A stretch of DNA of 64,000 nucleotides, taken from positions 170,887 through 234,886 of the IMG/VR virus record IMGVR_UViG_3300025536_000010. One strand, given 5' to 3'. A model generated the notes under the pieces. The model worked only from the letters and a program-made list of their open reading frames with translations, searched no databases and was not told the origin of the DNA. Positions 18,610-61,086 of this stretch are shown here, piece by piece. Made by a program: the position numbers and the translations under genes. Position 1 is the stretch's first letter, and each line of letters begins with the position of its first letter.

Positions 18610-18634
18610 TGGCTAAAAGCCACTTTTGAGAACT

Positions 18635-19738
18635 ATGGCACACGACACCCTCTGGCTCTCCGACGCGCACCTGCGCAACCGGAGAGGCGACGAGCAGTTC
18701 GCCCTGCGGCAGTGCATCACGGCCGCGAAGAAACATAAAGTCAAGCAGGTCATCGCCACGGGTGACCTGACCGACCGGCAGACCAACCGTTCTTTGCCCA
18801 TCTCCTTCTGGATGAAGCAGATTGACCGGCTCGAAGAAGCCGGTATCGCTTTCTGGTTCCTCCAGGGCAATCACGACGAAGACGAGCCGCCCTGGCTCTC
18901 GGCGCACCGGCACGCCAAGCACCTGCACAACCGCAGCGTTCAGGTCGGCCCCTACACTGGCTTCGGCCTCGACTTCCAGCCTTTCGGCAAACTGCAAGAG
19001 GTGCTGCCCGAGTTGCCGGCGGAGGCCAACCTGCTCATCTGCCACCAGGCGTGGAGCGAGTGGATGCACTTCGATGACGTCCCCCAGGGGGATTTCGCGC
19101 AGGTGCCGGGACACTTCTCGCACGTTTTCTCCGGGGACTACCACCGCAAGAAGGTGGATAAGTGCAAAAATGCAGACGGCGACAAGATGATCTGCGCCTC
19201 CGTGGGGGCGACCTGCGCTCAGAAGATCGACGAACCCCACGAGCACTACTACTGCCTGATCGGCGACGATGGCCAGCTGCGTTTCGAGAAGCTGCACAGC
19301 CGCGTCTATATCGAGTGGCCAGTCATGAACCGACCGGACGACCTGGATCAGTTCATGGAGGAGTACGACTCGGAACTGGCCAGGGCGGAGCAGCATGCTG
19401 CCGCCAACGACTACCCGGAGACGCTGGTCCGTCCCTACCTGCGCGTCACCTACAGCCACAAGCTGAACGACGCCGTCGCCCGTGTCACGAAGGCAGTTGG
19501 GGAGCGAGCAATCCTTTACTGGAAAGAGATCCCGCCCGAGGACAAGCAGCCGACCAAAAACAAGCCTGCCAAGGTCGGTAAGGAAGAAGCGGTCACACCT
19601 CTGAGCGTACTCGCCCAGGAGGTCGACAAGGAGAAGGAGCCCGAGGTTTTTGAACTCTGCACCCGGCTGCTCCAGGCCCCTGCGACCTTCAAAGAGGAGT
19701 TTGCCCGCTGGAAGGCCGAACGACTGCTGGAGGGGTGA
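18635..19738 (+). CDS. sbcD: SbcD/Mre11-like metallophosphoesterase nuclease
   Basis: SDAH, GDLTD, GNHD, CHQ, GDYH motifs; upstream of sbcC. Confidence 0.88.
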   Translation: MAHDTLWLSDAHLRNRRGDEQFALRQCITAAKKHKVKQVIATGDLTDRQTNRSLPISFWMKQIDRLEEAGIAFWFLQGNHDEDEPPWLSAHRHAKHLHNRSVQVGPYTGFGLDFQPFGKLQEVLPELPAEANLLICHQAWSEWMHFDDVPQGDFAQVPGHFSHVFSGDYHRKKVDKCKNADGDKMICASVGATCAQKIDEPHEHYYCLIGDDGQLRFEKLHSRVYIEWPVMNRPDDLDQFMEEYDSELARAEQHAAANDYPETLVRPYLRVTYSHKLNDAVARVTKAVGERAILYWKEIPPEDKQPTKNKPAKVGKEEAVTPLSVLAQEVDKEKEPEVFELCTRLLQAPATFKEEFARWKAERLLEG

Positions 19739-20404: not shown

Positions 20405-20957
20405 GAACAAGTTTTTGGTTGAACGTATCGAGCACCTCGAAGCGGTCGCGGAGGAGAATGAGGTGCTGCGCGGGCAACTCCAGGAGTTGGCCGAGAACTT
20501 GAACGTCGGCGCGGAGAAGGTCGAAGCGCTGGAGGAGGCGACCCGGTCGCTCAAGATGCGCTTGGATGACCTGACCGAGCAGCACGAGGAACTGGTGCTG
20601 TCTATTCACGGCAACGCCAAGAAAGAAAAGCCGTATACATGGGAGGACGAAGACGAAGACCCTGGCGAGAATCGGACCTATCTCGACGAGGATGAGGACG
20701 AAGACTCGGACGAAATCGCTGACGAAGACTCGGACGAGGATGAGCCCGAGCACTACATTATCGTGAACCCATGCAAGCCCGGCACCAAGGGCTTCACCAC
20801 TTACTTCCAGGGTCTTCGGCTGGGTGAGGAGCGCTGGACTCGCAATATGGACTCGGCCAAGCGCTACTACGACGAGGCGGAAGCGGAGGCGCAGAGGAAG
20901 CGCCTTCTCAAGAAGAACGGCAAGAGGCTCGAACTCCAGCCCGGCTACGGAGACTGA
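20397..20957 (+). CDS. Coiled-coil/acidic hypothetical protein
   Basis: AAGGAG RBS. Confidence 0.65.
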   Translation: MAKNKFLVERIEHLEAVAEENEVLRGQLQELAENLNVGAEKVEALEEATRSLKMRLDDLTEQHEELVLSIHGNAKKEKPYTWEDEDEDPGENRTYLDEDEDEDSDEIADEDSDEDEPEHYIIVNPCKPGTKGFTTYFQGLRLGEERWTRNMDSAKRYYDEAEAEAQRKRLLKKNGKRLELQPGYGD

Positions 20958-20960
20958 CCC

Positions 20961-23108
20961 ATGCACTTCCGCAAGCTACACTTCAAGAACGCCTGCCGGT
21001 TCGAGGACTTTCAGGTGGACCTCAAGAAGGGGTCCGTGGGGGTCTTCGGCAAGAACGGCATCGGTAAGAGCACCCTGCTCAACTTCATGTACGCCATACC
21101 CACAAATGACTTCTCGCGCTTCGAGGGGGTCAAGACGGACTGCATCCGCTACGGCGCACCGGAGAAGGCGGAGAGCTTTCTCTACGGCGAGATCGAGCAC
21201 AACGATCACCTGCTGTGCATCAAGCGGAACTTCAAGCCCACCAAGAACAACCCTGGCACGGTGCTGGTGGTCGACGGCGGTAAGGAGATCACTGACGCCA
21301 ACAAGGCCGAGGAAGAGATCGGCAAGATCCTGGGCGTCGACAAGAAGATGCTCGGGCTCTACGCTTTCAAGACCCAGGACCGCATCTACGACTTCCTGAC
21401 GACCACGCCGACCGAGCGAGCCAAGGCATTTGCCGTCCTGTGCCGCACGGAGGTCTGCGAGGAGATGTGGGACTTCCTGGGCGAGTTCCTCAACAAGGAC
21501 AGCGAGATCAACGCCGTTATCGTCGACAACTCCGACGAACTGCTGGCCGAGATCGCGGCGCTCAAGGGCCAGATCGAGGAACTGGATGCCTCGATCAAGC
21601 AGGAAGAGGAGCGGCTGCTCAACTCCAAAAGCGAGGCATCGGCCCGGGACATCCTCAAGAAGCAGGACCGTAAGGAGGATCTGCTCGGGCAGCAGGAGCG
21701 CTTGCAAGCCAGTCTGGAAGAAAGCCAGGTAACGCTGGCCGAGAAGCAGGAGCGCCTGGCTAAGAGCGAGCGTGTGCGCAAGAAGCGCGCCGAGGACGTC
21801 GAAAGTCTTTGCGTAGCCGCGGACGACGCCAAAGCCGCGCTCAAGGCGTGGGACGCCTACAAGAAGTACCGTGCGCGCCGTAAGGCCCTCAACGTGGAAG
21901 CCGAGGCCCTGGACCGCGAGGAGGAGGAGAATAAGCCGCCGGTGCAGCCGAAGGACTACGGCAAGCACGATCTGGACGCACTGCGCAAACAGGTGGTCGA
22001 TATGGAGTCTGCTTTGGACAGGGCCAAAGCCGTTGTCGCCAAGTTCCAAAGCCAAAAGATCGTGGCTTGCCCGACTTGTAACACGCCGGTCACGGATCTG
22101 GCAGATCACCTGAACGAACAGCGCAAGATCGTCCTGGAGTACCCCAAGGAGGTCGAGCGTCTGGATACCATCGTTGAAACGATGACGGTCTACGACAACA
22201 AGGTTCGCAAGTACGAGAAGTGGTCGGCCGGGTTCGAGGCACGGCGCAAAGCCAACCAGGATGCCCGGGCTGCCCTCAAGGGCATCAATACGCCGGACGG
22301 CGACGAGGCTGATCTCAACAAGGTCATCGAACAGTACCAGGAAGCTGTCCAAGCGCTCACGGAGATTGTTGGCAAGGTCGAGAACACACGCCGCGCCGTG
22401 ACGACTGCGGAGGCTGCGCAGGAGGCTACGCAGAAACGATTGGCCGAGGTGGCCGAAGGCGTCGTGGAGAACACGGTCGACGCGGCCAAGGTGGAGCGGG
22501 CCAGGGAGCGCTTGGAGGAGCATATCGCGTCGGGTAAGAACATCGCACGCATCCAGGGCGAGTGGAAGGGCGTGCAGGCGCAGATCGAAAGCAAGGAGGA
22601 AGACCTGCGCAAGCTGCGCAACCGTCTCAAGCGCAGCAAGAAGGTACGGGCTGTGGCCCGGGTGGCCGAGCGGGTGCGGGACGTCTTGCACCGCGACCGG
22701 CTGCCGCGGCGCGTGGCTGCTACCAACCTGTCACGCATGGAGGGTGACATCAACGAGGGCCTGGGTTACTTCGGCGATCCGTTCTGGGTGGAGTCCGACG
22801 AGAGCCTCCAGTTCACGGCGCACAAACCGGGTGAACCGCCACAACCGGCTCTACGGTTGTCGACCGGGCAGAAGGTCGTGTTGGCGATGGCGTTCTGGCC
22901 TGCGGTGGGCTCGCTCTGGCAGCAGGATCTCGGTATGCTGGCCTTGGATGAGCCGACTGCCAATCTGGACGAGGAGAACCGGAAATTCCTCAGTCAGGCC
23001 CTGGGCGCCATGTCGGCCAAATGCCGCGGGCGGCGGCAACTCATTCTCGTGACGCACGACCCAAACCTGGCGAACTCCTTCGACCAGGTTATCAAACTGG
23101 AGACGTAG
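20961..23108 (+). CDS. sbcC: SbcC/Rad50-like SMC ATPase
   Basis: GKNGIGKST, Q-loop, coiled coil with CPTC zinc hook, LSTGQ signature, LALDEPTANLD, VTH. Confidence 0.92.
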   Translation: MHFRKLHFKNACRFEDFQVDLKKGSVGVFGKNGIGKSTLLNFMYAIPTNDFSRFEGVKTDCIRYGAPEKAESFLYGEIEHNDHLLCIKRNFKPTKNNPGTVLVVDGGKEITDANKAEEEIGKILGVDKKMLGLYAFKTQDRIYDFLTTTPTERAKAFAVLCRTEVCEEMWDFLGEFLNKDSEINAVIVDNSDELLAEIAALKGQIEELDASIKQEEERLLNSKSEASARDILKKQDRKEDLLGQQERLQASLEESQVTLAEKQERLAKSERVRKKRAEDVESLCVAADDAKAALKAWDAYKKYRARRKALNVEAEALDREEEENKPPVQPKDYGKHDLDALRKQVVDMESALDRAKAVVAKFQSQKIVACPTCNTPVTDLADHLNEQRKIVLEYPKEVERLDTIVETMTVYDNKVRKYEKWSAGFEARRKANQDARAALKGINTPDGDEADLNKVIEQYQEAVQALTEIVGKVENTRRAVTTAEAAQEATQKRLAEVAEGVVENTVDAAKVERARERLEEHIASGKNIARIQGEWKGVQAQIESKEEDLRKLRNRLKRSKKVRAVARVAERVRDVLHRDRLPRRVAATNLSRMEGDINEGLGYFGDPFWVESDESLQFTAHKPGEPPQPALRLSTGQKVVLAMAFWPAVGSLWQQDLGMLALDEPTANLDEENRKFLSQALGAMSAKCRGRRQLILVTHDPNLANSFDQVIKLET

Positions 23109-23110
23109 CC

Positions 23111-24088
23111 ATGTCCACCGCCGCGCTCGACTGCGTGAACATCTTGCGTCTGCACACAGACGACGAGGGCGTGGTGTGGTTCGGCGACGATTACCAGTTG
23201 GCTATCAACAGTGAAACCAGAGCGTCAGACTTTTTCGAGTCTGACGCTCTGGGTATCGAACTCAAACACGTCCGTAAGGTGCGGCTGCTAGGCACACGGG
23301 CTAACGCCCCGCTTATCGTCCGCCTGGCGCAGACACGCTGTCGTGACCACAACGTCCAGATTCAACTCGGCTCGCCGGCTTTGGTGCCAACCAGGGCAGC
23401 ACGCGGCGACCCAACTACTGTGTTGCAGTATCTGTGGCAGCCCAGCTACAGCAGCACCTGCCCCGGCATGTGGCACGCTTTCGCTGAACACGACTTCCCT
23501 GGCTACTTGATGCTCAGCGAGTTGCGGGAGAAGCAAGCTGCTTGCCTTGGGGTCGGCAGCTTCCAGGAAGTGCCCGACGTCGTGAAACGCACCGCTCGCT
23601 ACCACCCAGCCTGGCCAGCAGTCACGTTCGTCCCTTGGCTGGATCACAACTGGGCCTGTCGGCTGCTTTGCGAGATTATCGACCCTCGTTGGTTCATCCA
23701 CCCGCAACGACCAGACCGGCCGTCCAGACTGTTCAATCATCTGGGCCTCACGCCGCGGAACATGGGCGCGTTTCTCCAGCAGGGCTTCCCGGACCCGCAC
23801 TACTACCAGGCTACCACAGCACTGCGCTGCTGGTACAATCGAGGCATGCCTCAGAGCCGTAGTGGTCCGGGGAGTTTCCTCTGGCGTGCCTACCTGTCGA
23901 CCGACAACCAGGTCAAAGGTCTGCTGCGCGGTACGCAGCAACTGGTGCGGCTGATCCAGTCGGTGTGGTTGCAAACAGTCGTCCGACCGCACCCTGAATT
24001 CCGGTTTCAACCAATCAAGTTTTTCAAAGATCCAGCCGAAGCGGAGGCGTTCGAGCAGCACCGAGCGTCTTGTAAACCAGTGGAATGA
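23111..24088 (+). CDS. IS110-transposase/Nop-domain-like protein, apparently catalytically inactive
   Basis: HPAWPAVTFVPWL...ACRLLCEIIDPRWF...SRLFNHLGLTP matches the IS110 C-terminal pattern LL.EI.D..RF...L..Y.GL.P; the N-terminal RuvC-like part lacks the DEDD residues. Confidence 0.6.
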   Translation: MSTAALDCVNILRLHTDDEGVVWFGDDYQLAINSETRASDFFESDALGIELKHVRKVRLLGTRANAPLIVRLAQTRCRDHNVQIQLGSPALVPTRAARGDPTTVLQYLWQPSYSSTCPGMWHAFAEHDFPGYLMLSELREKQAACLGVGSFQEVPDVVKRTARYHPAWPAVTFVPWLDHNWACRLLCEIIDPRWFIHPQRPDRPSRLFNHLGLTPRNMGAFLQQGFPDPHYYQATTALRCWYNRGMPQSRSGPGSFLWRAYLSTDNQVKGLLRGTQQLVRLIQSVWLQTVVRPHPEFRFQPIKFFKDPAEAEAFEQHRASCKPVE

Positions 24089-24147: not shown

Positions 24148-24672
24148 ATGCGGGAACTAACCGTACGGATACGGTTTCGGGAACACTGTATTGGTAACGC
24201 CAAGGAGGCCAACGGGGGCTACCGGCTACTGCTGCCGCGGAACCCGTTTGGGCGTATCGTTTTTCCGGCCAGTTGGCACCGATCCAATCTCAGGTTCGCC
24301 GCGCAACTGCTTGGGCGACACCAGGACGAGGCCCAGAAGATCCTCTGGGACGTAGAGGTTGACGGCTACGTCCGCAAAGGCGGCTGGTTCAAACGGCAGT
24401 ACCAAACCAACGACGGTAGGCCGCGCCATGCCCTGCACGAGGCGTTTTTGCCGGGGCAGGTGGTCGGTATCAACTGCGTGGTGCCGGCGACCATCCCCGA
24501 CGACGATTTCATCAGCCTGATGAACATCGCGGGGCGTTACAAGGGTTTGAGCCCGCACGGCCCTGGTCAGTTTGGCTTTTTCGAGGTCGAGAGCGTCCGA
24601 CCGCGCCGGGCGGCGCAGCCGGGCGAAGGAGAGCAGCATGACGAAGGGGTGAAACAATGGAAGCACGTCTAG
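24148..24672 (+). CDS. Stand-alone RAMP-superfamily (Cas7/Csm3-like) protein, 174 aa
   Basis: LTVRIRFREHCIG (first strand plus Gly), GRIVFPASWHRSNLRFAA (P.S..R..LR helix), HEAFLPG, LMNIAGRYKGLSPHGPGQFGFFEV (Gly-rich loop plus last strand). Confidence 0.65.
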   Translation: MRELTVRIRFREHCIGNAKEANGGYRLLLPRNPFGRIVFPASWHRSNLRFAAQLLGRHQDEAQKILWDVEVDGYVRKGGWFKRQYQTNDGRPRHALHEAFLPGQVVGINCVVPATIPDDDFISLMNIAGRYKGLSPHGPGQFGFFEVESVRPRRAAQPGEGEQHDEGVKQWKHV

Positions 24673-24795
24673 CTGCCAACTAGACGTGCCTCCATAGCGG
24701 TGACGGCTTGTTCCGGTGTGCTGGTGGAACCATAAGCCTGTTCTAACTATACCCCGCCGCCACCCCAGTTTCAACTCTATTCCAGTTTTTGGAGT
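24663..24795 (+). ncRNA. Candidate structured RNA between the RAMP and helicase genes
   Basis: Perfect 10-bp stem GCACGTCTAG/CTAGACGTGC (24663-24689); second bulged stem ATAG..ACGGCTT-GTTCC/GGAAC..AAGCC.GT..CTAT (about 24694-24750). Confidence 0.35.
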
Positions 24796-24804
24796 GGCGA
24801 AGCT

Positions 24805-26373
24805 ATGCGCAAGAAGATCACCGTCCTGCGGACGGATGACAAGATCGTCGTCGAACCGACCACGCGCCGCGTACGAGCGCTGATCGAGCAAGACCTCACC
24901 TACATCGAAAAGAGCTTCTTTCACGGCTACGAGCGCAAGAAGCGGCTCAAACACGGCCTGCCGCCTTTCGAGGAAATCGAGTGGCAGTGTTACGGTGAGG
25001 ATCACAAGGGCAGGCTCTCCACGTCCTGGGGCTTCTGCGAGCGCATCGTGGACCTGCTGGAGAAGGACGGCTACCCGGTCGAGGTGCGCTGGGCTACCAA
25101 GGGCAACCAGGAGGAGGCTGCGCAGCGCGCCGAGACGGTCTACAAGCCTCGCTGGGACCGCATCGAGCAGCTGGAAGCGGATGGCTTCAAGTTCCGCTAC
25201 AAACAGCGGAAGGCCCTCAATCTAATAGCCACTTTTGAGAACGGCCGCATCTCGTGCCCCCCTGCCTGGGGCAAGGGCACCCTTATCATGCTGGCCAGTG
25301 TCCTCTTCCCCAAGGCCAAGATTGCCGTGGTCACCGACCGCGTCGACGTTCTCCAGACCCGGCTCTATCCCGAACTGGCCATGAATCTACCCTCGGTAGG
25401 TATCGTGGGTGGGGGCATGCGCCGCAAGGGTCGGCGAGTCATGTGCTACACCGCAGACAGCCTGCACCACTGCCCGAACGACGTGGACTTTGTGTTCGTG
25501 GACGAGGGCCACGAGGCGTGTGCCGACAAGTTCGCGGAGTCGATGGGCAAGTTCAGTAAAGCCAGGATCTGGATGTTCTCGGCAACCTGGGATATGCGCC
25601 TGGACAACAAGGACATCCGTGCCGAGGCGATGGCTGGCAAGATCCGCCTGCACGTCCCGTACCAGAAGGCCGTCGAACACGGCATGGTCGTCCCAGTCGA
25701 GGTCATCTGGGACGACGTCATCATGGACGAAAACCCGTGCTCGGGTCTGGACGGCGTGGACAAGGATCGGGCTGGCATCTGGGCCAACGACTATCGCAAC
25801 AAGCTGATCGCCAAGAACAGCGGCCTGTACGGCCCGGAGGTCCAGGAACTTATCACCTGCAAGACGCTCGAACACGCTCTGCACCTCAAAAAGATTTTGC
25901 CGGGTCACGTCCTGGTCTACTCAGGACAGCAACTCAAGGACCGGGACATCCGCTGGTTTCGTGACTGCGGCCTCATCGACGACACCTGGCGGCCGATGAC
26001 GATGGAGAAGCGTAAGCGGCTGACCAAACGCTTCGAGCGCGGTAAGCTCAAGAAGGCCATCGCCACCACGGTTTGGAACGTGGGTGTGAACTTCAAGCAG
26101 CTGGCCGTCGTCAACCGGGCGGACGCGGGCGGTTCGCCGATCAACGACACACAGATCCCTGGACGCGGCGCGCGTATCGACGACGTCTCGGGTAAGAAGA
26201 AGCTCTGTGCCATCATCCACGATTACAAGGACCAGTTCGACACAGGCACGCGGATGAAAGCCGAGCGCCGAGGAAAGTCTTATGACGCCAACGAGTGGCG
26301 TCAGCATCACCCAAAGAAGGAGAAGCGGTCGCTGTTGCGGCAGCTGATGGAATGGGGGAACCCACTCAAATGA
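24805..26373 (+). CDS. Superfamily 2 (DExH) helicase
   Basis: CPPAWGKGT, VDEGH, SAT, IATTVWNVGVN, QIPGRGAR. Confidence 0.9.
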   Translation: MRKKITVLRTDDKIVVEPTTRRVRALIEQDLTYIEKSFFHGYERKKRLKHGLPPFEEIEWQCYGEDHKGRLSTSWGFCERIVDLLEKDGYPVEVRWATKGNQEEAAQRAETVYKPRWDRIEQLEADGFKFRYKQRKALNLIATFENGRISCPPAWGKGTLIMLASVLFPKAKIAVVTDRVDVLQTRLYPELAMNLPSVGIVGGGMRRKGRRVMCYTADSLHHCPNDVDFVFVDEGHEACADKFAESMGKFSKARIWMFSATWDMRLDNKDIRAEAMAGKIRLHVPYQKAVEHGMVVPVEVIWDDVIMDENPCSGLDGVDKDRAGIWANDYRNKLIAKNSGLYGPEVQELITCKTLEHALHLKKILPGHVLVYSGQQLKDRDIRWFRDCGLIDDTWRPMTMEKRKRLTKRFERGKLKKAIATTVWNVGVNFKQLAVVNRADAGGSPINDTQIPGRGARIDDVSGKKKLCAIIHDYKDQFDTGTRMKAERRGKSYDANEWRQHHPKKEKRSLLRQLMEWGNPLK

Positions 26374-29951: not shown

Positions 29952-29988
29952 CGGTTACTAACTGCGTGTGCTAAGGATCGGAGTAAGT

Positions 29989-32900
29989 ATGGACGGAGAG
30001 AAAAAGAAAGCCAAACTGCGCCGGCGCATCCGCATGCTGGAAAGAGAGGAGCGCAAAAAGCATAAGCGGCTGCTCAACGCGGTAGTCGGCAAGTCTGGCA
30101 TGTGGCCTTTGAACGCCCCGGGGATGCCTCCCCCGGGGCCTGATTTTCTCAGGGTCGCTCAGGGCCTGGGCGATCAGACGGAATACGCCAAGCAAACCAA
30201 GACGAGGGAGGGCGTCTATAAGCCTGGCGACAAACTGGAGGAACTGTACCGGCGGGCGCTGCGCGAGGTCGGCTTCTCCATCGACGTCAAAATCCGCGAG
30301 GGCACCTATGGTCCGGTGACGTTCGTGCCTGGACACATCTGGGGCCAGTATTCGGAAGAGTGGCAGCGGTCGATCCTGGAGCCTAACTACGAGCCCCCCA
30401 AGATCGACGGCCCCCACCCGGCCGAAGTGTTTGTCCTGGGTAAGATGCCCTGGCGCGAAGAGACAATCGAGGGCCGTAACCTGATCGGGGCTACCGGCGA
30501 AATCCTCATCGACCTGATCGCTAAGCTGCGCGTCCGCGGTGCGCAGAAATGGTACGTCAGCAATCTTGTGAAGTTCATGCCGCCCGACGACACCAGCGTC
30601 CTCAAAGCGGGCTGGATACACGATTGCATGCCGCTCCTGCATCAGGAACTGCGGATCGTGCGGCCCAAGTACATTCTCTGCCTGGGCGCGGACGCCTCGA
30701 AGTGGCTGCTCGGCGACAAGTTCAACGTCAGCTACATGGCGGGGCGCGTCGTCCCCTATACCTACCCTATCCATTTGACGTACGACCACGAGCCTGAACA
30801 CCACACGGCGCACGTCATGACGGTGTTGCACCCTGCGGAAGTCTCCCGCGAGCCCGCCAAGGCCCGCATCCTGGAGAGCAACTTCCGGCGCTTCGCGTAC
30901 CTGATCGAGGGCCACAACCTCGACATTGAGGAACAGGGACTGGACCACAGGGTCTGCAACACGCTCGAAGACGCCGAGGAGTGGGTGCAGGAGGTCAACG
31001 CCTACTTCGCCGACAAGCCGAAGCGCTTACGGCTCGTGGGGATCGACGCCGAATGGCAGGGGCAGCACCCGATCAACAAGGGTAGCTACGTCCGCACGAT
31101 CCAGATCGCGTGGGACGAGAAAAAGTCGATGTGCTTCGTGATCTCGCACCCGGGCGGCAAATGCGCGTTTCGGGACCGAGACGGCAAACCGGCGGTCAAG
31201 CGCCTGGTCAGGCTGCTCAACGAGTTCATGGAGGACAAGCGTGCTTGCGGCCACTTCTTTGTCTCTGACTTGGAGTGGCTGCATCATCTGGGGTTCGATC
31301 CAATCAAGCACTGTCCGGTGCCGCTCTACCCGAACAAGAAAGGCAAGCTGGCCTGGGAGCGGCTGCGGAACGGTGAAGGTTGGCTCGACAGCGCCTACAT
31401 GAACCACGCTGTCGAGGAGACGGCACCGCTGGGGTTGGAAATGCTGACGATGCGCTACACTAGCGCACCGCGGTACGACATTGCACTCGAAGATGCCGTG
31501 AAGGAGTATTGCAAGAAACAAGGCATCAAGCGCGAGGCTCTGGAGGGCTACGGCGATATACCGGACAAGGTGCTGGTGCCGTACGCCAACTACGATGCCG
31601 ACGTGACGCTGCGCATCGTCAAGAACTTGCTGGAACTTCTCGACTCGGACTACGAAGGCAACTGCGCCTGGGAGCCGTTCTGGGAGTCGATGATTATCCA
31701 AAAACCGATTTTGAGAATCCACAAGAACGGCATCTGTGTCGACCGTGGCCGCGTGGACGATCTCACCAAAAAGTTCGTCACGGCGCGTTACGCCCAGGAA
31801 GAGAAGATCCAGACCTGGGCGCGCTGGACGGAGACGGAAGAGTGCGCGGCGTTCAACGTCCGCTCGAACCAGCAGGTTCGTGAGTTCCTGTTCGGCGAGA
31901 AGTACAACGGCAAGCGGGACGAGCGCGGCAAGCCGATCCGCCTGCGCCCCGAGGGTGCGCGCTGTTTGAATCTGGAACCGTTGCTGGACACCAGCAAACC
32001 GCCTCGGCGGTGGAAAGACCTCAAGGAGCGTGGTCTGGACCGCGATGCCACGCCTGGCACTGGCAAGATGATCCTGGGCATCATGGCGCAGGAGAATCTG
32101 AACGTGGCGGACCAGATCAACATGGTCCGCGACTATCGGTTCCTGGATCAGGTTTTGAAGTCGATCCTGCGGCACCCCAAAGTGGACGAGGACGACCACT
32201 GGATCGAGAACGAGGACGGCTTTTTGGAGTACGAAGCAGGCTTGGCCGCTTGCATCGACAACGACGGTCGGGTGCGTACGCACATCTACCCGACAGCGGA
32301 AACGGGTCGGTGGAAACACTCCCGGCCGAACCTAGCTAACATCAGCAAGAGCCGCGACCCCGACTACGTCCGCATGCTGGGCGGCGAGAAGGTGAACGGC
32401 AAATGGGTCGGCGGGCTGTACACGCACAAGCTGCGCAGCGTCCTCAAAGCTGCCCCCGGGTACTGTCTTATCGAGTTCGACTACAAGGGCGCCGAACTAT
32501 ACGGTATGTCCTTGATGGCTGGCTCGAAGAAGATGATGGAGCACTGCGAGCGCGCTAACACCTACGAGGAGGAGGGCTACAGCCGGAAGGGCAAGAAAGC
32601 CAAACCGGATCACAAATGCAAGGACGGCAAAAAGGGCTGCGAGTTGTGCGGCTACCCGTCGCCGGAATACTACGACATCCACTCGAACGTCGCCAAGCTG
32701 GCGTTCCAGCTGGAGTGTCACCCGAGCAAGTTCGGCCTGGATCAGATCGGCAAATCGCACTTCCGCACGCTGGCGAAGAATGTGATCTTCGGCATCGCCT
32801 ACGGTCGTGGGGCCAAAGCCATCGCGCTCCAGGCCAAGGAGCAGGGCGTCAACGTCACCGTCGAGCAGGCCCAGATGGTCATCGACGCCATTTTCGAGAT

Positions 32901-33381
32901 GTACCCGGAGTTGGTCCCGTTCTTCGACGAGGCCAAGCAGCGAGCGCTCAACGAGAAGTGGTTATGCCACTGCTTCGGTCGCTACCGGCGCTTTCCCACG
33001 ACTTCGGACTACAAGATGGAGGGTGAGTTCGAGCGGCAGGCGATGAACTTCCCGATCCAGGGCATGATCGCGTCCGCTGTGGATCGCGGCCTGGCTTTCC
33101 TGGACGACAAGATTGACGAGCTTGGCCTCCAGGACGATATTCGTCTGTTGTTGCAGATGCACGACGCCGGCCTGGTGGAGTGCAAGTACGAATTGGTCCC
33201 GTACGCCAAGAAGCTCATCAACTGGGCGATGGTCGACATGGTCGAGATCTGGCCTACGGATCTGGCCGGAGAAATGCGCGGCGACGGTCCCTACCACCTG
33301 GGCCTGGACTTCGCCGTCGAGCAGCACTGGGGCGAGAAGATCCCCAAGGACAAGTACGCTGAACTAGGAATCCCGGTATGA
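29989..33381 (+). CDS. polA: Family A DNA polymerase with N-terminal uracil-DNA-glycosylase-like domain and 3'-5' exonuclease
   Basis: UDG-like block (LGKMP..G..G, SNLVKF.P, HPA); IDAE, YANYDAD exonuclease motifs; TGRW..SRPNLANI; DYKGAEL; RTLAKNVIFGIAYG; QMHD. Confidence 0.93.
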   Translation: MDGEKKKAKLRRRIRMLEREERKKHKRLLNAVVGKSGMWPLNAPGMPPPGPDFLRVAQGLGDQTEYAKQTKTREGVYKPGDKLEELYRRALREVGFSIDVKIREGTYGPVTFVPGHIWGQYSEEWQRSILEPNYEPPKIDGPHPAEVFVLGKMPWREETIEGRNLIGATGEILIDLIAKLRVRGAQKWYVSNLVKFMPPDDTSVLKAGWIHDCMPLLHQELRIVRPKYILCLGADASKWLLGDKFNVSYMAGRVVPYTYPIHLTYDHEPEHHTAHVMTVLHPAEVSREPAKARILESNFRRFAYLIEGHNLDIEEQGLDHRVCNTLEDAEEWVQEVNAYFADKPKRLRLVGIDAEWQGQHPINKGSYVRTIQIAWDEKKSMCFVISHPGGKCAFRDRDGKPAVKRLVRLLNEFMEDKRACGHFFVSDLEWLHHLGFDPIKHCPVPLYPNKKGKLAWERLRNGEGWLDSAYMNHAVEETAPLGLEMLTMRYTSAPRYDIALEDAVKEYCKKQGIKREALEGYGDIPDKVLVPYANYDADVTLRIVKNLLELLDSDYEGNCAWEPFWESMIIQKPILRIHKNGICVDRGRVDDLTKKFVTARYAQEEKIQTWARWTETEECAAFNVRSNQQVREFLFGEKYNGKRDERGKPIRLRPEGARCLNLEPLLDTSKPPRRWKDLKERGLDRDATPGTGKMILGIMAQENLNVADQINMVRDYRFLDQVLKSILRHPKVDEDDHWIENEDGFLEYEAGLAACIDNDGRVRTHIYPTAETGRWKHSRPNLANISKSRDPDYVRMLGGEKVNGKWVGGLYTHKLRSVLKAAPGYCLIEFDYKGAELYGMSLMAGSKKMMEHCERANTYEEEGYSRKGKKAKPDHKCKDGKKGCELCGYPSPEYYDIHSNVAKLAFQLECHPSKFGLDQIGKSHFRTLAKNVIFGIAYGRGAKAIALQAKEQGVNVTVEQAQMVIDAIFEMYPELVPFFDEAKQRALNEKWLCHCFGRYRRFPTTSDYKMEGEFERQAMNFPIQGMIASAVDRGLAFLDDKIDELGLQDDIRLLLQMHDAGLVECKYELVPYAKKLINWAMVDMVEIWPTDLAGEMRGDGPYHLGLDFAVEQHWGEKIPKDKYAELGIPV

Positions 33382-34553: not shown

Positions 34554-36725
34554 ATGGCAACGAAACGTTTGGCAGCACGCAAGCCCGCCGATTACGACAG
34601 CCGCGTCCACGGGCGCCGCGAGACGAACATTCCCCAGGACGACCACACCATCAACGAGGGCATCTGCCCCGTCAACCTGCTGCGCCCGCGGTACGATGAC
34701 GGCCCCATGTACTTCATCCCGTTCAAGCACCCCAGCTACGAAGACCCGGAGAACATGCTCCAGCCGGGCCGTACTGCCCCGGAACCGGGTGCTTACTCGC
34801 ACTGGCTGATCCGTATGGAGGTCGCGGCTTACATCGGCTTGCCGGACTGCACGAAGCACAGCTTCAACCTGCGCCACCCGGCCGACAAGGAGGCCAAGAA
34901 GGGCAACCCCTACCGCGAGTTGTACTTCGCCGCTGCCCAGGCGCACGATAACGGTCAGTTCGGGAACGGCAAGAAATGGGACAGCAGCTGGAACAAGTTC
35001 CTCAAGGGGAGCAAGAAGTCCGGCGGTGCAGCGCTGTCCCGTCCCACTGCCAAGTATTTCGTCCAGGGCGCCGTGTTCTGCAACGGCGACCGCGACTACA
35101 TGGAAGGCGACCGCGAGTTGCCGTTCGGTTTGGCCCAGGGTGACGACCTGACGGTCATTCAGATCCCGGTGTCCGCCGGCCAGGGTATCATCAAGCTGCT
35201 GGACATCGAGAAGGACCAGTACGAAGGCAACGGCGAAGACGATCCTTCGGCCCCGTTCAAGTGGGGTGATCCGACTGGTCGGTTCAAGAAGAAGGCGCGC
35301 ACCATCTCCGGCTGCAAGGTCTTCTGCATCTACAACCCGAAGAAGACCAAGATCAAGCAGGACACCTCGTTCAGCGGGGAGTTCAAGGAGATCCAGGGCT
35401 ACGAGGCCGCCATCAAGGAAGCCTACAAGGCCGGCGGGCAGGTGCTGTTCGACGGCAACTTGGAAACCAAGCAGGTCGATTTCATCTTCGAGCACGCGCA
35501 GTTCTGGTTCGACGACGAAGACAGCGGCACCAAGGGGCTGTTGCGCATCGCACCCGTGGAACAGCAGGCGCTGTGGGTCGCCCAGGCGTTCAAGTCGGCT
35601 CCGAAGCTGATTGCCTTCGCCTGGTCCGAGCAAGAGGGCCTCATGACCGACGAGGTCAAGGCCGTCTTGGCGGCGCGTGTCAGCGCTGTCGTCCCCGGCG
35701 AGGACGACGACGATGACGACGATGAGGACGATGAGACGCCGAAGCGCAAGGTGAAGAAAGACCCGAGCGCCAAGGCCGGCAAGAAGGCCAAGCCCGAGGC
35801 CGACGACGAAGATGATGATGAAGACGACGAGGAGGAAACCTCGAAGAAGGGCAAGAAGCCTGCCAAGGGCAAGAAGGCCAAGGACGAGGAAGACGAGGAA
35901 GACGAGTTCGAGGACGACGAAGACTCGGACGACGACTCGGACGACGACGAAGAGGAGGACGAGAAGCCGGCCAAGAAGGGTAAGAGCAAGAAGGCCAAGG
36001 ACGACGACGAGGACGACGACTCCGACGACGAAGAGGAGGACGACGACTCCGACGACGAAGACGACTCCGACGAGGACGACGACTCCGACGACGAAGAGGA
36101 GGACGACGACTCCGACGACGAAGAGGAGGACGACGACTCCGACGACGAAGACGACTCCGACGAAGAGGAGGACGAGAAGCCGGCCAAGAAGGGTAAGAGC
36201 AAGAAGCCCGCGGCCGAGGACGACGAAGAGGAGGAGGACGACGACTCCGACGACGAAGACGACGAAGAGGAGGAGGACGACGACTCCGAGGACGACGACT
36301 CCGACGACGAAGACGACGAAGAGGAGGAGGACGACGACGAAGACGACGAGAAGCCGGCCAAGAAGGGTAAGAAGCCTGCGGCCAAGGACGACGACGAAGA
36401 GGAGGACGACGAAGACGACGAAGAGGAGGACGAGGACGACGACAAGCCGACCAAGAAGGGCAGCAAGGACAAGAAGCCCGCTGCCAAGGTCGGGAAGAAG
36501 CCCGAAGCCAAGGCCGAGAAGCCGGCTGCCAAGAAGGGCAAGGGCAAGAAGGGCGACGAGGAGGACTACTTCGGCGATAGCGACGCCGGCAAGGCCGCTA
36601 GCAAGTCCGCGAAGGCCGCCAAGGCCGCCAAGGACAACTCGGCCAAGCGCGGGTCGGCACCGAAGAAGGAAGCTCCCAAGCCTCCGGCGAGCAAGGGCGG
36701 TAGCGCCAAGCGCAAGCAGAAGTAG
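34554..36725 (+). CDS. Probable ssDNA-binding/recombination mediator protein with a roughly 340-aa D/E/K low-complexity tail
   Basis: Position between polA and recA, strong codon bias, own terminator, acidic tail; the fold is not recognised directly. Confidence 0.55.
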   Translation: MATKRLAARKPADYDSRVHGRRETNIPQDDHTINEGICPVNLLRPRYDDGPMYFIPFKHPSYEDPENMLQPGRTAPEPGAYSHWLIRMEVAAYIGLPDCTKHSFNLRHPADKEAKKGNPYRELYFAAAQAHDNGQFGNGKKWDSSWNKFLKGSKKSGGAALSRPTAKYFVQGAVFCNGDRDYMEGDRELPFGLAQGDDLTVIQIPVSAGQGIIKLLDIEKDQYEGNGEDDPSAPFKWGDPTGRFKKKARTISGCKVFCIYNPKKTKIKQDTSFSGEFKEIQGYEAAIKEAYKAGGQVLFDGNLETKQVDFIFEHAQFWFDDEDSGTKGLLRIAPVEQQALWVAQAFKSAPKLIAFAWSEQEGLMTDEVKAVLAARVSAVVPGEDDDDDDDEDDETPKRKVKKDPSAKAGKKAKPEADDEDDDEDDEEETSKKGKKPAKGKKAKDEEDEEDEFEDDEDSDDDSDDDEEEDEKPAKKGKSKKAKDDDEDDDSDDEEEDDDSDDEDDSDEDDDSDDEEEDDDSDDEEEDDDSDDEDDSDEEEDEKPAKKGKSKKPAAEDDEEEEDDDSDDEDDEEEEDDDSEDDDSDDEDDEEEEDDDEDDEKPAKKGKKPAAKDDDEEEDDEDDEEEDEDDDKPTKKGSKDKKPAAKVGKKPEAKAEKPAAKKGKGKKGDEEDYFGDSDAGKAASKSAKAAKAAKDNSAKRGSAPKKEAPKPPASKGGSAKRKQK
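35700..36560 (+). repeat. Coding low-complexity tandem repeats (GAC/GAA/GAG runs; DDDSDDEEE and EKPAKKGK units)
   Basis: Repeated gacgacgactccgacgacgaagaggag and gagaagccggccaagaagggtaag. Confidence 0.9.
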
Positions 36726-59064: not shown

Positions 59065-61086
59065 ATGACCACAACCAAGACTGGCAAGCTCGACTTCAAC
59101 GCCTTGGGCACGAGCCCCGAACATCAAACCTGGAAGAAGCATCGTGAACTTCTCCTCAACGTGAGCGGCGACGCTGCGGGGTTCCGTGGCTGCATCGCCC
59201 TCGGCTTGCTCGTGCGGCGTGTCGTCGGTGAGGCCATGCTGTGGGGGAACAAGAAGTTCCTGCACAACGCGGATGTCGACTGGCTGAGCATCACCGACAT
59301 CCCCAGCGGGTTCTTCAAGATGCTGCGGCGTCGCCGCGAGGTCCACTGGGCGACTCGCCGGCAGGCGACCACACGCTTCGGCATGCCGGTTCTCAGTTTC
59401 GGCTCCGAAGGCAGCGCCGCCTGGGATTTCCGCAGCATGCCTTTCGACAGCGCCACGTTGTCGGACACGGTCGAGGGCGTGGACGTCCAGATCAACCACA
59501 GCCCCGACGTCCTCAGCCCGTCCGAGCATCCGCAACTCTTCCGCGCCTTGAACGCGCTCGAATGGGCCGCCACGTCCACAGCGTTCAGCTACCGGGGCAC
59601 CTGGCAGGCTGAGAAGGAGCACCTGTTCCAGACCCTTGGCAAGAAACTCTCCAACCCCGAGGACCGCTTGGTGGTCTTCGGGAACAACATCCTGATGAAC
59701 CATGTCGAGCGGCCCGACGTTTGGATGCCGAAGGCGTACCTGGGCTTCCCGCTCCAGCTGGCCGGCAAGCTCTACGATCGCGCCACGCGCCCGCTGGCCG
59801 GTGGCCCGCCGTACTTCTCCGACGATCTGCGTCGGTTGGCGGTCAAGACTATCAACGATCCCTACGTTGCCCCGTACGCGGGCCAGGTGGTGAAGATCGT
59901 CCGTGAGGTCTATCACGGGTTGCCGGCGGTTGCGCTCCACCTGGTCCTCAGCAACAACAAGAAGTACACACACGTCATTCGCTTCGGCCAGCAGGCGAAG
60001 ATCTTTCGCCAGCAGGGTGCGTATTTCAAAGCTGGTGAAGCGCTCGGGCAGGAGAACTTCATCCTGACGCCCGACTGGGAAAGCAAGAGTCCCTACACTC
60101 GCTGGGACAAGTGGCTGCCGCGCCTGCTCAGTCCGCACTTCGATGCCGGCATCAGGGTCTGGTTCGAGCGGCAGCTGGTTCAGTTCACGCCGGGCGTGAT
60201 CCACGCGCCTTCGGCCATCGCGGCGGTGGCGGCGCTGGGGAACGCCCTGGACGAGTCGCATCTGCTCTGGGACGTGTCGCCCAGCGAGCGCTACTTCAAC
60301 GCGACGTGTGACACCTACGTTTTCCCGACGATTCAGATCATGCGGTGGGACGACTTCCGGGGCACCTTGCCCGGCGGCGTCGCCTATGATCTGAACCCGG
60401 CCGATCCGCGGTTTCTCACGGTCGAAGAAGCCAGGCGGTTGCGTGCCGAGGCCAGGGTGCGCAAGCAGGAGGAGGACAGGATTCGTCAGGAGGAGGAGCG
60501 GGCACGCAGGGAGGAAGAGGAGGCGTGTCAGGCCATCCAGGACATGCGCGATCCGATTGCGGCTGAGGCTCGGCGGCAGCGCGAGGACGCGCTCAAGCTG
60601 GTGCGCCGGGATCAGAGTGAAGAAGAGGCGCGCCTGGCCGTGATTGCCGTTCAGAACGACCCGGTGGCGGTCGAGGCTGCGCGGCAGGCGGCGATGGCTC
60701 GGAAGCTGGTCAAGCTGGAGCCGGTCGAAGAGGAAGCGCGCCTGGCTGTGGCTGCCTGCCAGAACGACCCGGTGGCGGTCGAGGCTGCGCGGCAGGCGGC
60801 GATGGCCAGGGAGATGGTCAAGCGGGAGCCGGTCGAGGAGGTCGATACGGCGGACCTGCCGCTGGCTGGCACTGTCACCCGCGTCGGCGTTCACCGCGAC
60901 TGGTTCGACATGCGTGAGGCGGATGGTGTCCGGGTCCGGTTCACCATGAATGGTTTCACGTCGGTCTACGGGCCGCGCGGCGGTGTCAGCAGGAAGGGCG
61001 TTCATGATGAGCGTCTCGCCAGGGGCGCCGAGGTCAGCGTGATCTGCGGTGCCGACGAGAAGGCTCTTGAGGTCTATATTAAGTAA
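59065..61086 (+). CDS. Large hypothetical protein with internal 36-aa repeats
   Basis: AAGGAG RBS; about 673 aa. Confidence 0.75.
   Translation: MTTTKTGKLDFNALGTSPEHQTWKKHRELLLNVSGDAAGFRGCIALGLLVRRVVGEAMLWGNKKFLHNADVDWLSITDIPSGFFKMLRRRREVHWATRRQATTRFGMPVLSFGSEGSAAWDFRSMPFDSATLSDTVEGVDVQINHSPDVLSPSEHPQLFRALNALEWAATSTAFSYRGTWQAEKEHLFQTLGKKLSNPEDRLVVFGNNILMNHVERPDVWMPKAYLGFPLQLAGKLYDRATRPLAGGPPYFSDDLRRLAVKTINDPYVAPYAGQVVKIVREVYHGLPAVALHLVLSNNKKYTHVIRFGQQAKIFRQQGAYFKAGEALGQENFILTPDWESKSPYTRWDKWLPRLLSPHFDAGIRVWFERQLVQFTPGVIHAPSAIAAVAALGNALDESHLLWDVSPSERYFNATCDTYVFPTIQIMRWDDFRGTLPGGVAYDLNPADPRFLTVEEARRLRAEARVRKQEEDRIRQEEERARREEEEACQAIQDMRDPIAAEARRQREDALKLVRRDQSEEEARLAVIAVQNDPVAVEAARQAAMARKLVKLEPVEEEARLAVAACQNDPVAVEAARQAAMAREMVKREPVEEVDTADLPLAGTVTRVGVHRDWFDMREADGVRVRFTMNGFTSVYGPRGGVSRKGVHDERLARGAEVSVICGADEKALEVYIK
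60619..60840 (+). repeat. 108-bp coding tandem duplication (2 copies plus a degenerate upstream copy)
   Basis: EEEARLAV.A.QNDPVAVEAARQAAMAR..VK.EPV twice, starting at 60619 and 60727. Confidence 0.9.

Follow-up and report, generated by a model that had tools for sequence, protein, structure and literature searches.

A nuclease-dead Tas-like protein lacking a recognisable guide array is conserved beside sbcC in a lineage of large phages

Members of the Tas/IS110/Nop5 superfamily are known for RNA-guided DNA cutting, recombination and repression, and for RNA methylation. Tas proteins were found through a search seeded with IS110's RNA-binding domain, and clades with an inactive RuvC domain were noted (Faure et al., PMC12045711); IS110 has in turn been linked to Nop5 (Vaysset et al., PMC11213020). 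In a 2026 preprint, dead-RuvC TasR and TasA are described as RNA-guided repressors, dead TasR is reported to bind DNA with its RNA, and a compact, array-less branch of TasR is placed in dense viral genomes (Xu et al., bioRxiv 10.64898/2026.09.09.750476). Here we analyze a relative of these proteins, P0001 (hereafter also the Tas-like protein), encoded directly downstream of an sbcC-like gene in a 64,000-nucleotide (nt) stretch of viral DNA (the window, positions 170,887 to 234,886 of IMG/VR record IMGVR_UViG_3300025536_000010). The window is the final 64 kb of this 234,886-bp record, which is complete by CheckV. With moderate confidence, we favor the view that P0001 is an array-less, nuclease-dead member of the superfamily, closest to TasR, that works as a non-catalytic nucleic-acid-binding adaptor of an SbcCD/helicase module. 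The gene and the domains of its product are as follows (window coordinates):

23111–24088, + strand: Tas-like open reading frame (ORF), 325 amino acids (aa), P0001; nuclease-dead RuvC-like and Nop/Tnp-like domains, supported by a stop-free translation, homologues and an AlphaFold2 model
23111–23482, + strand: RNase H/RuvC-like domain without the catalytic carboxylate set, residues 1–124, from structure matches and column conservation
23483–23599, + strand: acidic linker, residues 125–163, with helices at 126–144 and 156–162, from the model's secondary structure; median isoelectric point (pI) 5.5
23600–24085, + strand: basic Nop/Transposase_20-like domain, residues 164–325, with HPAWPA, DPRWF, LGLTP and GLLRA motifs

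The AlphaFold2 model of P0001, made from a 69-sequence alignment, had a mean pLDDT of 93 and a pTM of 0.91. In an exhaustive structure search of ~48,000 PDB representatives, TIGR-TasR (9mty) ranked first, with Z 10.3 over 244 residues (model 10–319); TasH came next (Z 8.8, model 129–318), and the IS110-family recombinase ISCro4 spanned 254 residues. A re-scored Foldseek list gave TasR (Z 10.6, 237 aa), TasH (8.7, residues 126–318), IS621 (8.1 over 252 aa, and 8.0) and ISCro4 (7.8), so that the five best solved-structure matches all come from the Tas/IS110 superfamily; Foldseek alone put IS621 on top, with a probability of 0.96. Matches ranked below those five cover only residues ~4–124 and include, at Z 6–7, RuvX/YqgF, poxvirus resolvase, RuvC and the RuvC domains of TnpB, Cas12 and Cas9, which is why we assign an RNase H/RuvC-like fold to the N-domain. 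In the ESM Atlas just one cluster, which has both PF01548 and PF02371, matched at full length (236 residues, TM 0.46), and a feature search there yielded weak leads only, the Atlas's own model being poor. As modeled, then, P0001 has the superfamily architecture, in which a helical, Nop/Tnp-like domain comes after a RuvC-like N-domain; this is the arrangement that an initial annotation, made from the letters of the DNA alone, had proposed.

Profile searches connect the same region to Tas and IS110. P0001 itself matched no Pfam or PHROG profile. A PADLOC search and tblastn against 50,697 phage genomes were empty, and a profile of alignment A4 found chance matches only among PDB sequences. A family member from the same sbcC-X-helicase context, P0074, matched PF02371 (Transposase_20) at E 5.3e-5, its 24.0 bits exceeding the cut-off of 21.3, over residues 153–210, the HPAWPA...DPRWF...LGLTP stretch. 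PF02371 was matched by 2 of 140 members, P0074 being the one seen above the cut-off, and was the sole Pfam family matched by more than one member; PF01548 was matched by none in either the 69-sequence or the 140-sequence set. Against NF052498 (‘TIGR-Tas system RNA-guided endonuclease’), P0001 scored 15.1 bits (E 0.017, residues 157–214) and P0074 33.6 bits (E 3.7e-8); P0074 also matched NF033542 (‘IS110 family RNA-guided transposase’) at E 1.6e-5. At E<=0.1, 80 of the 140 members matched NF052498 (best 2.3e-8) and three matched NF033542, and no other NCBIfam family was matched by more than one. All of these scores fall far under the equivalog cut-offs, 100 bits for NF052498 and 140 bits for NF033542 (best 24), and we therefore take the family to be a distant homologue of Tas and IS110 that lies in neither curated family. 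It is nearer to Tas than to IS110. The initial annotation had called the protein ‘domesticated IS110/Tas-like’; our results bear out the Tas-like half of that label but do not extend to descent from a transposase. Its reading of the HPAWPA...DPRWF...LGLTP stretch as Tnp/Nop-like agrees with the NF052498 and PF02371 matches. The strings it had quoted are indeed in the translation (VRLLGTRAN at residues 57–65, VQIQLGSPALV....RGDP at 82–101, HPAWPAV...LLCEIIDPRWF...LGLTP at 165–215 and the final helix RGTQQLVRLIQSVW at 273–286), and they are not chance, as they coincide with the most conserved columns of a family of 1036 clusters at E<=1e-3.

It is conceivable that P0001 resembles Tas and IS110 by convergence, or only trivially, as an unrelated phage replication accessory factor in which a helical bundle is joined to an RNase H fold. 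The absence of a Pfam or PHROG match to P0001 would fit this idea, as would the moderate Z scores (8–10.6) and several empty comparisons: a profile of alignment A1 found no match among PDB sequences, and neither hhalign of A1 and A2 against the R751 IS4321 transposase, or against a low-diversity alignment of its relatives, nor a local hidden Markov model (HMM) of IS4321 run against the family returned anything, although the IS4321 profiles are too narrow for these results to count against homology. However, the five best PDB matches come from one superfamily and are alone in covering both domains, and the NF052498, NF033542 and PF02371 matches share one conserved core, with 80 of 140 members involved. 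We regard convergence as very improbable.

The best structural matches and the weak, recurrent similarity to NF052498 both lead to the dual-repeat TIGR-Tas nucleases TaTasR and SpTasH (9MTY, 9W03, 21KL; Z 10.6 and 8.7). These rely on an active RuvC or HNH domain, process RNA with a Y/H loop and are accompanied by arrays of 36-nt tigRNAs, whereas the family described here has no nuclease site or array and scores far under 100 bits. A DEDD/RuvC site requires three or four essentially invariant carboxylates. The best acidic columns of the N-domain, D17 and D100, are conserved at 59% and 57% in 140 sequences, and none exceeds 65% in the 69-sequence set; given that requirement, loss of the carboxylate site can be concluded independently of any reference alignment. 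No serine column exceeds 69%, and in P0001 LGLTP is followed by RNMGAF (x-N... in the family) without a Ser-Gly loop. Both the missing RuvC-like acidic residues and the missing Ser-Gly after GL.P had been pointed out in the initial annotation, and both absences extend across the family. Judging by motif and strand register, R58 probably occupies the position of the IS110 Glu in ‘vvmEaTG’, the second catalytic position, and ‘GSP...RxDP’ would stand in place of ‘vNP...KTDxxDA’.

P0001 could still be an enzyme, a structure-specific nuclease, junction resolvase or RNA-processing activity that serves the SbcCD recombination module with a site drawn from H15, R58, N65, H122, D128, Y132, H165 and H317. 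The resemblance of the N-domain to RuvX/YqgF, poxvirus resolvase and RuvC (Z 6–7) and the recombination gene context would suit such a role. R58 is conserved at 91%, N65 is invariant in alignment A1 and at least 90% conserved in A2, the H15, H122, D128, Y132, H165 and H317 columns are conserved too, with several His, Tyr and Asp columns at 82–99%, and a metal-independent Tyr/His dyad cuts RNA in dual-repeat Tas proteins. Yet conserved carboxylates are required in the RNase H-fold nucleases known so far, and here the best one stands at 59%; the His and Tyr that are conserved lie outside the C-terminal loop that bears the Tas Y/H dyad; and the phage already has a resolvase of its own, even though searches for RuvC and RusA gave no match in it:

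G000:C1:6106–6375, outside the window: Endonuclease VII-type junction resolvase (PF02945, 79 bits)

We consider a residual enzyme quite improbable. Dead sites have precedent among the stem-loop TasR proteins PateTasR and CsTasR, RNA-guided repressors of transcription that likewise combine a RuvC fold lacking catalytic residues with a Nop-like C-domain and a short C-terminus. Arg residues have been reported in the dead TasR pocket, which may parallel R58 if, as is probable, R58 occupies the second catalytic position. PateTasR and CsTasR form a coiled-coil dimer and come with stem-loop TIGR arrays and with CUU/UG box motifs, and none of these features was found for P0001.

The family is large. 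A word-indexed search returned 74 unnamed homologues of 300–330 aa at 27–53% identity, and an exhaustive profile search returned 1036 clusters (at 50% identity) at E<=1e-3, 598 of these at E<=1e-30; members are of similar length among the 150 clusters listed. More than 1000 clusters therefore make up a family that is completely unannotated. Its invariant or near-invariant columns include W23, R58, G61, N65, H165-P166, D191-P-R-W194, R203, G212 (in LGLTP), W241, F256-L257, R259 and W286. The C-domain is basic family-wide (median values: pI 9.5, net charge +6.5) and contains six conserved basic columns (R193, R203, R/K206, R233, R259 and R273), and the N-domain is neutral. In the model the two domains are 39 residues apart, joined by linker helices of 19 and 7 residues. 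This linker sits where Tas, IS110 and Nop5 have a coiled-coil dimerization hairpin, and the alignment to TasH begins at residue 126. Residues 144–151 (window 23540–23563) form an insertion specific to P0001, ACLGVGSF, in a lower-confidence linker loop; it is missing in 61–68 of the 69 homologues.

We then gathered 72 related loci for the Tas-like gene. The core genes around it in the window are:

18626–19738, + strand: SbcD-like phosphoesterase (Metallophos, phrog_100), found in 60 related loci
20961–23108, + strand: SbcC-like ATPase (phrog_77, E 1.4e-45; SMC_N, AAA_23, SbcC_Walker_B)
24805–26373, + strand: superfamily 2 (SF2; ResIII/Helicase_C) DNA helicase (phrog_16, E 7e-29), found in 70 related loci

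All 72 related loci carry a single full-length Tas-like ORF, and the phage genome holds one copy. The ratio of nonsynonymous to synonymous substitution rates (dN/dS) was 0.03–0.10 in the twelve pairs with measurable dS (1.0–2.7). Immediately upstream lies sbcC in 72 of 72 loci that have an upstream flank, and the SF2 helicase lies downstream in 70. The gene order, sbcD, sbcC, Tas-like gene, a small gene, SF2 helicase, DnaB-like helicase, primase and PolA with a uracil-DNA glycosylase (UDG)-like domain, is kept down to 27% identity. Throughout a large lineage of phages of roughly 200–235 kb, the Tas-like gene is thus kept as a single copy by strong purifying selection.

In the window the longest ORF in the P0001 frame begins at 23021; we set the start at 23111 because all 69 of 69 homologues begin at the position of that ATG. 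The junction reads ...GGAGACGTAGCCATG, i.e. GGAGACG-TAG-CC-ATG, and the Tas-like gene therefore starts 2 nt past the sbcC stop, with a Shine-Dalgarno-like GGAG 8 nt upstream of its start. This intact ORF of 325 aa, free of stops from 23111 to 24088 (+) and 2 nt from sbcC, is as the initial annotation had described it. Stop and start of sbcC and the Tas-like gene overlap by 1–20 nt in 48 of 71 loci, and in the remainder, bar one, lie within 27 nt of each other.

These data bear directly on whether the gene could be an IS110-family element that was inserted recently or is decaying, a pseudogenized transposase. The fold is common to IS110, one relative matches PF02371 and the catalytic residues are missing, all as a dying transposase might look; but the gene is single copy, full-length at the same syntenic site in 72 loci and constrained at a dN/dS of 0.03–0.10, and PF01548 goes unmatched in 69 and in 140 members. 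The Tas-like gene abuts sbcC, leaving no non-coding flank in which a bridge RNA or the ends of an element could lie. Conservation and synteny refute this explanation, to which we attach a negligible probability, and a decaying insertion sequence was rejected on the same grounds; retention rather than decay is what the initial annotation had argued for. The IS110 bridge recombinases (IS621, 8WT6/8WT9; ISCro4, 9T56) do share the two-domain architecture over ~250 aa and the Transposase_20 D..RF and GL.P motifs. In contrast to them, the family has no DEDD tetrad, Ser nucleophile, PF01548 signal, bridge-RNA flank or mobility, and is single-copy and syntenic.

Between the Tas-like gene and the helicase lies the small gene, a predicted Cas7-like neighbor that the initial annotation had missed, and at its end a hairpin:

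24148–24672, + strand: predicted minimal Cas7/Csm3/Cmr4-like RAMP, 174 aa, with a homologue-supported start (longest ORF from 24085) and assigned by fold
24657–24695, + strand: strong hairpin over the RAMP stop codon, 15 bp with the stop in the stem; RNAfold –23.5 kcal/mol

The RAMP gene product gave no profile match. Its AlphaFold2 model (pLDDT 91) had 139 Foldseek matches in the PDB at E<=1e-3, the top ones all Csm3, Cmr4 or type VII Cas7 (best 8e-7, probability 1.00); in a VIA search it reached Z 11.3 to Cmr-beta, with the first 40 entries all CRISPR RAMPs, and its best viral (BFVD) match was a ‘Cas system-associated RAMP’. On this model, the product of 24148–24672 has a RAMP fold, with an RNA recognition motif (RRM) core and a G-rich loop. 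Invariant residues include H97, E98, the G-rich-loop G129, Y131, G133, S135, P136 and G143. The Csm3-type catalytic Asp is unconserved, and the window copy carries N in the RDP motif. The hairpin is followed by ~110 nt of non-coding sequence before the helicase gene, and similar post-RAMP hairpins occur in closer relatives only (L009, L010, L011, L031, L054 and L064); it is a probable operon-end, terminator or stabilizer element.

Of 73 loci with a Tas-like gene, 61 also have the RAMP gene as its neighbor, and 77 of 79 RAMP loci have a Tas-like gene, mostly directly upstream. The pairing is strong yet not obligate. In L082 (1331–3989) the RAMP gene comes directly after sbcC without a Tas-like gene, and in L149 (1617–3450) ~1.8 kb of unrelated short ORFs take the Tas-like gene's place. 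Complex prediction for the Tas-like protein with the RAMP gave a median score of 0.29 against a mark of 0.32, which we count neither for nor against binding. In the papers that we searched, no pairing of a RAMP with a Tas-type protein is described, and the accessible text of Xu et al. and of the VIPR preprint mentions neither SbcCD coupling nor a Tas-RAMP pairing. The RAMP neighbor resembles VIPR (a minimal viral RAMP with vap and vrRNA) and CRISPR Cas7 in its small size, its single RRM and its G-rich loop, and in being phage-encoded beside DNA-interacting proteins; it differs from them in having no pentamer-repeat tract or CRISPR array, and in lying inside a replication operon and not between long intergenic regions.

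We looked for an RNA partner in several ways. Over the whole genome, Tandem Repeats Finder (TRF) and a scan for interspaced k-mers recovered coding repeats only and no TIGR or CRISPR array, although degenerate single units could escape these scans. The genome contains no tracts of YNNGG, NNNGG, YNNNG or NNNNG (the YNNGG type being the vrRNA signature of VIPR), and ~150 related loci contained one short match only to vrRNA-type tracts, in L005. Rfam searches at gathering and E-value thresholds found nothing above chance. In a synonymous-site scan of a subclade with saturated synonymous sites, change was reduced only in the first ~12 codons, which overlap sbcC. A canonical TIGR, CRISPR or VIPR system was rejected, with no array and no vrRNA-like tract found by these scans.

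A guide might still be hidden. P0001 could be a functional RNA-guided DNA binder or repressor like dead TasR and TasA, with a guide from a single unit, a coding region or a distant site, acting in host take-over, life-cycle control or competition with mobile elements, and with its adjacency to SbcCD incidental. Dead TasR and TasA do repress transcription under RNA guidance, and P0001 keeps the Nop-like core motifs and the basic surface. ‘An alternative guide RNA source’ is left open for the array-less branch by its authors. Stem-loop tigRNAs keep few conserved nucleotides and may lie within genes, so that TRF and k-mer scans could miss them. Against this, no array was found in the 235-kb genome, which is CheckV-complete, suppressed synonymous change in the gene is limited to the sbcC overlap, and the coiled-coil dimerization hairpin is apparently cut down to a 39-residue linker; moreover, the position among replication and recombination genes is invariant over 72 loci at 25–50% identity, a pattern that fits core genes rather than accessory conflict systems. 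We judge a hidden-guide repressor unlikely.

A complex of the kind formed by Nop5, Nop56 and Nop58 in box C/D (s)noRNPs provides another comparison. These proteins likewise have a dead RuvC-like N-domain, a docking surface there, and a Nop domain, and Nop5 is a precedent for exaptation. The phage, however, has no L7Ae (PF01248) or fibrillarin (PF01269) in its 235-kb genome, in searches for which control genomes were positive, and a snoRNP-like (box C/D Nop5-type) complex was rejected. P0001 also differs from Nop5-type proteins in having no evident coiled coil and in its DNA-metabolism context.

The family fits the description of the array-less, divergent tas clade of Xu et al. (2026). Proteins of that clade have, like the family here, ~300 aa with RuvC and Nop domains, no detectable array and a dense viral genome; they have no coiled coil, and none is evident here. 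The family here probably belongs to this compact TasR branch, a comparison made by description only. The available text assigns the clade no function or context; SbcC coupling, the Cas7-like neighbor, family size and selection data come from the present analysis. None of five metagenome identifiers of related loci appears in the supplements of Faure et al. This array-less, dead Tas-type protein, fixed in a phage core operon, was probably glimpsed, though left uncharacterized, in the 2026 preprint.

In the adaptor reading that we favor, the Tas-like protein would act without catalysis. Its basic Nop-like domain would bind nucleic acid; by analogy with its relatives, the ligand is most likely to be RNA or a hybrid of RNA and DNA. 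Its dead RuvC domain would offer a docking surface for DNA or protein, as in dead TasR and Nop5. Produced in step with SbcC, and in most genomes also with the RAMP, it could form a recognition or adaptor subunit that directs or restrains processing of phage replication and recombination intermediates by SbcCD and the helicase; any RNA partner would not be array-encoded. Several observations weigh against this. The array, vrRNA-tract, Rfam and in-gene synonymous-constraint searches found no RNA partner. The association with SbcCD or the RAMP is predicted from gene order, the RAMP is missing in 11–12 of 73 loci, and the Tas-like gene is missing in two RAMP loci. The dead-site residues were mapped by motif and secondary-structure register and not by superposition. 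If the coiled coil is indeed missing, a dimer holding a dual-spacer tigRNA may fail to form. The sole sequencing run that contains the sequence is its own source DNA, a subsurface metagenome.

If the adaptor reading is right, the family would add an exaptation to the superfamily, and a guide-less or array-less version of the superfamily would be a core gene of phage DNA metabolism. The question of the array-less compact TasR posed by the 2026 TIGR-Tas preprint also gains concrete candidate partners in SbcC/SbcD, the Cas7-like RAMP and the SF2 helicase. A bolder extension, which we find distinctly doubtful, is that the Tas-like protein and the orphan RAMP form one ribonucleoprotein (RNP) in which non-array RNA (from transcripts of phage or host, from primers or from R-loops) marks the DNA that SbcCD and the SF2 helicase are to process. 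Cooperation between the two would connect TIGR-Tas with the CRISPR/VIPR RAMPs, two separate lineages of RNA-guided machinery. A jumbo-phage lineage would then have, in its core replication/recombination operon, a machine that processes DNA under the direction of RNA but without an array.

Further along the operon, the window encodes the polymerase of the phage:

29968–33381, + strand: family-A DNA polymerase, 1137 aa; homologues in related phages have an N-terminal UDG-like domain (PF03167 + PF00476)

The closest relative of this polymerase among 50,697 sequenced phages has only ~24% identity, from which we conclude that the source is an uncultivated jumbo phage. The window has a G+C content of ~61%, and its + strand carries almost all genes.

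Several repeats were seen in passing. A long Asp/Glu-rich coding repeat at window 35700–36540 (GAC/GAA-type units, period 3, 9, 27 and 63) encodes an extremely acidic segment, and a shorter acidic repeat lies at 20685–20744, inside a 186-aa ORF between sbcD and sbcC. At 60619–60836 a 108-bp unit is duplicated in tandem (2 copies, 88% match), with a 54-bp sub-period. Outside the window, G000:C1:91200–99500 and 144800–145400 contain collagen-like Gly-X-Y coding repeats (period 9, 18 and 27), probably in tail-fiber or structural genes. In two related phages, CsrA-like and SpoVG-like genes lie just upstream of the sbcD/sbcC module (L003:4115–4330 and L005:5323–5805), and a fused PfkB + CTP_transf_like (HldE-like) gene lies nearby.

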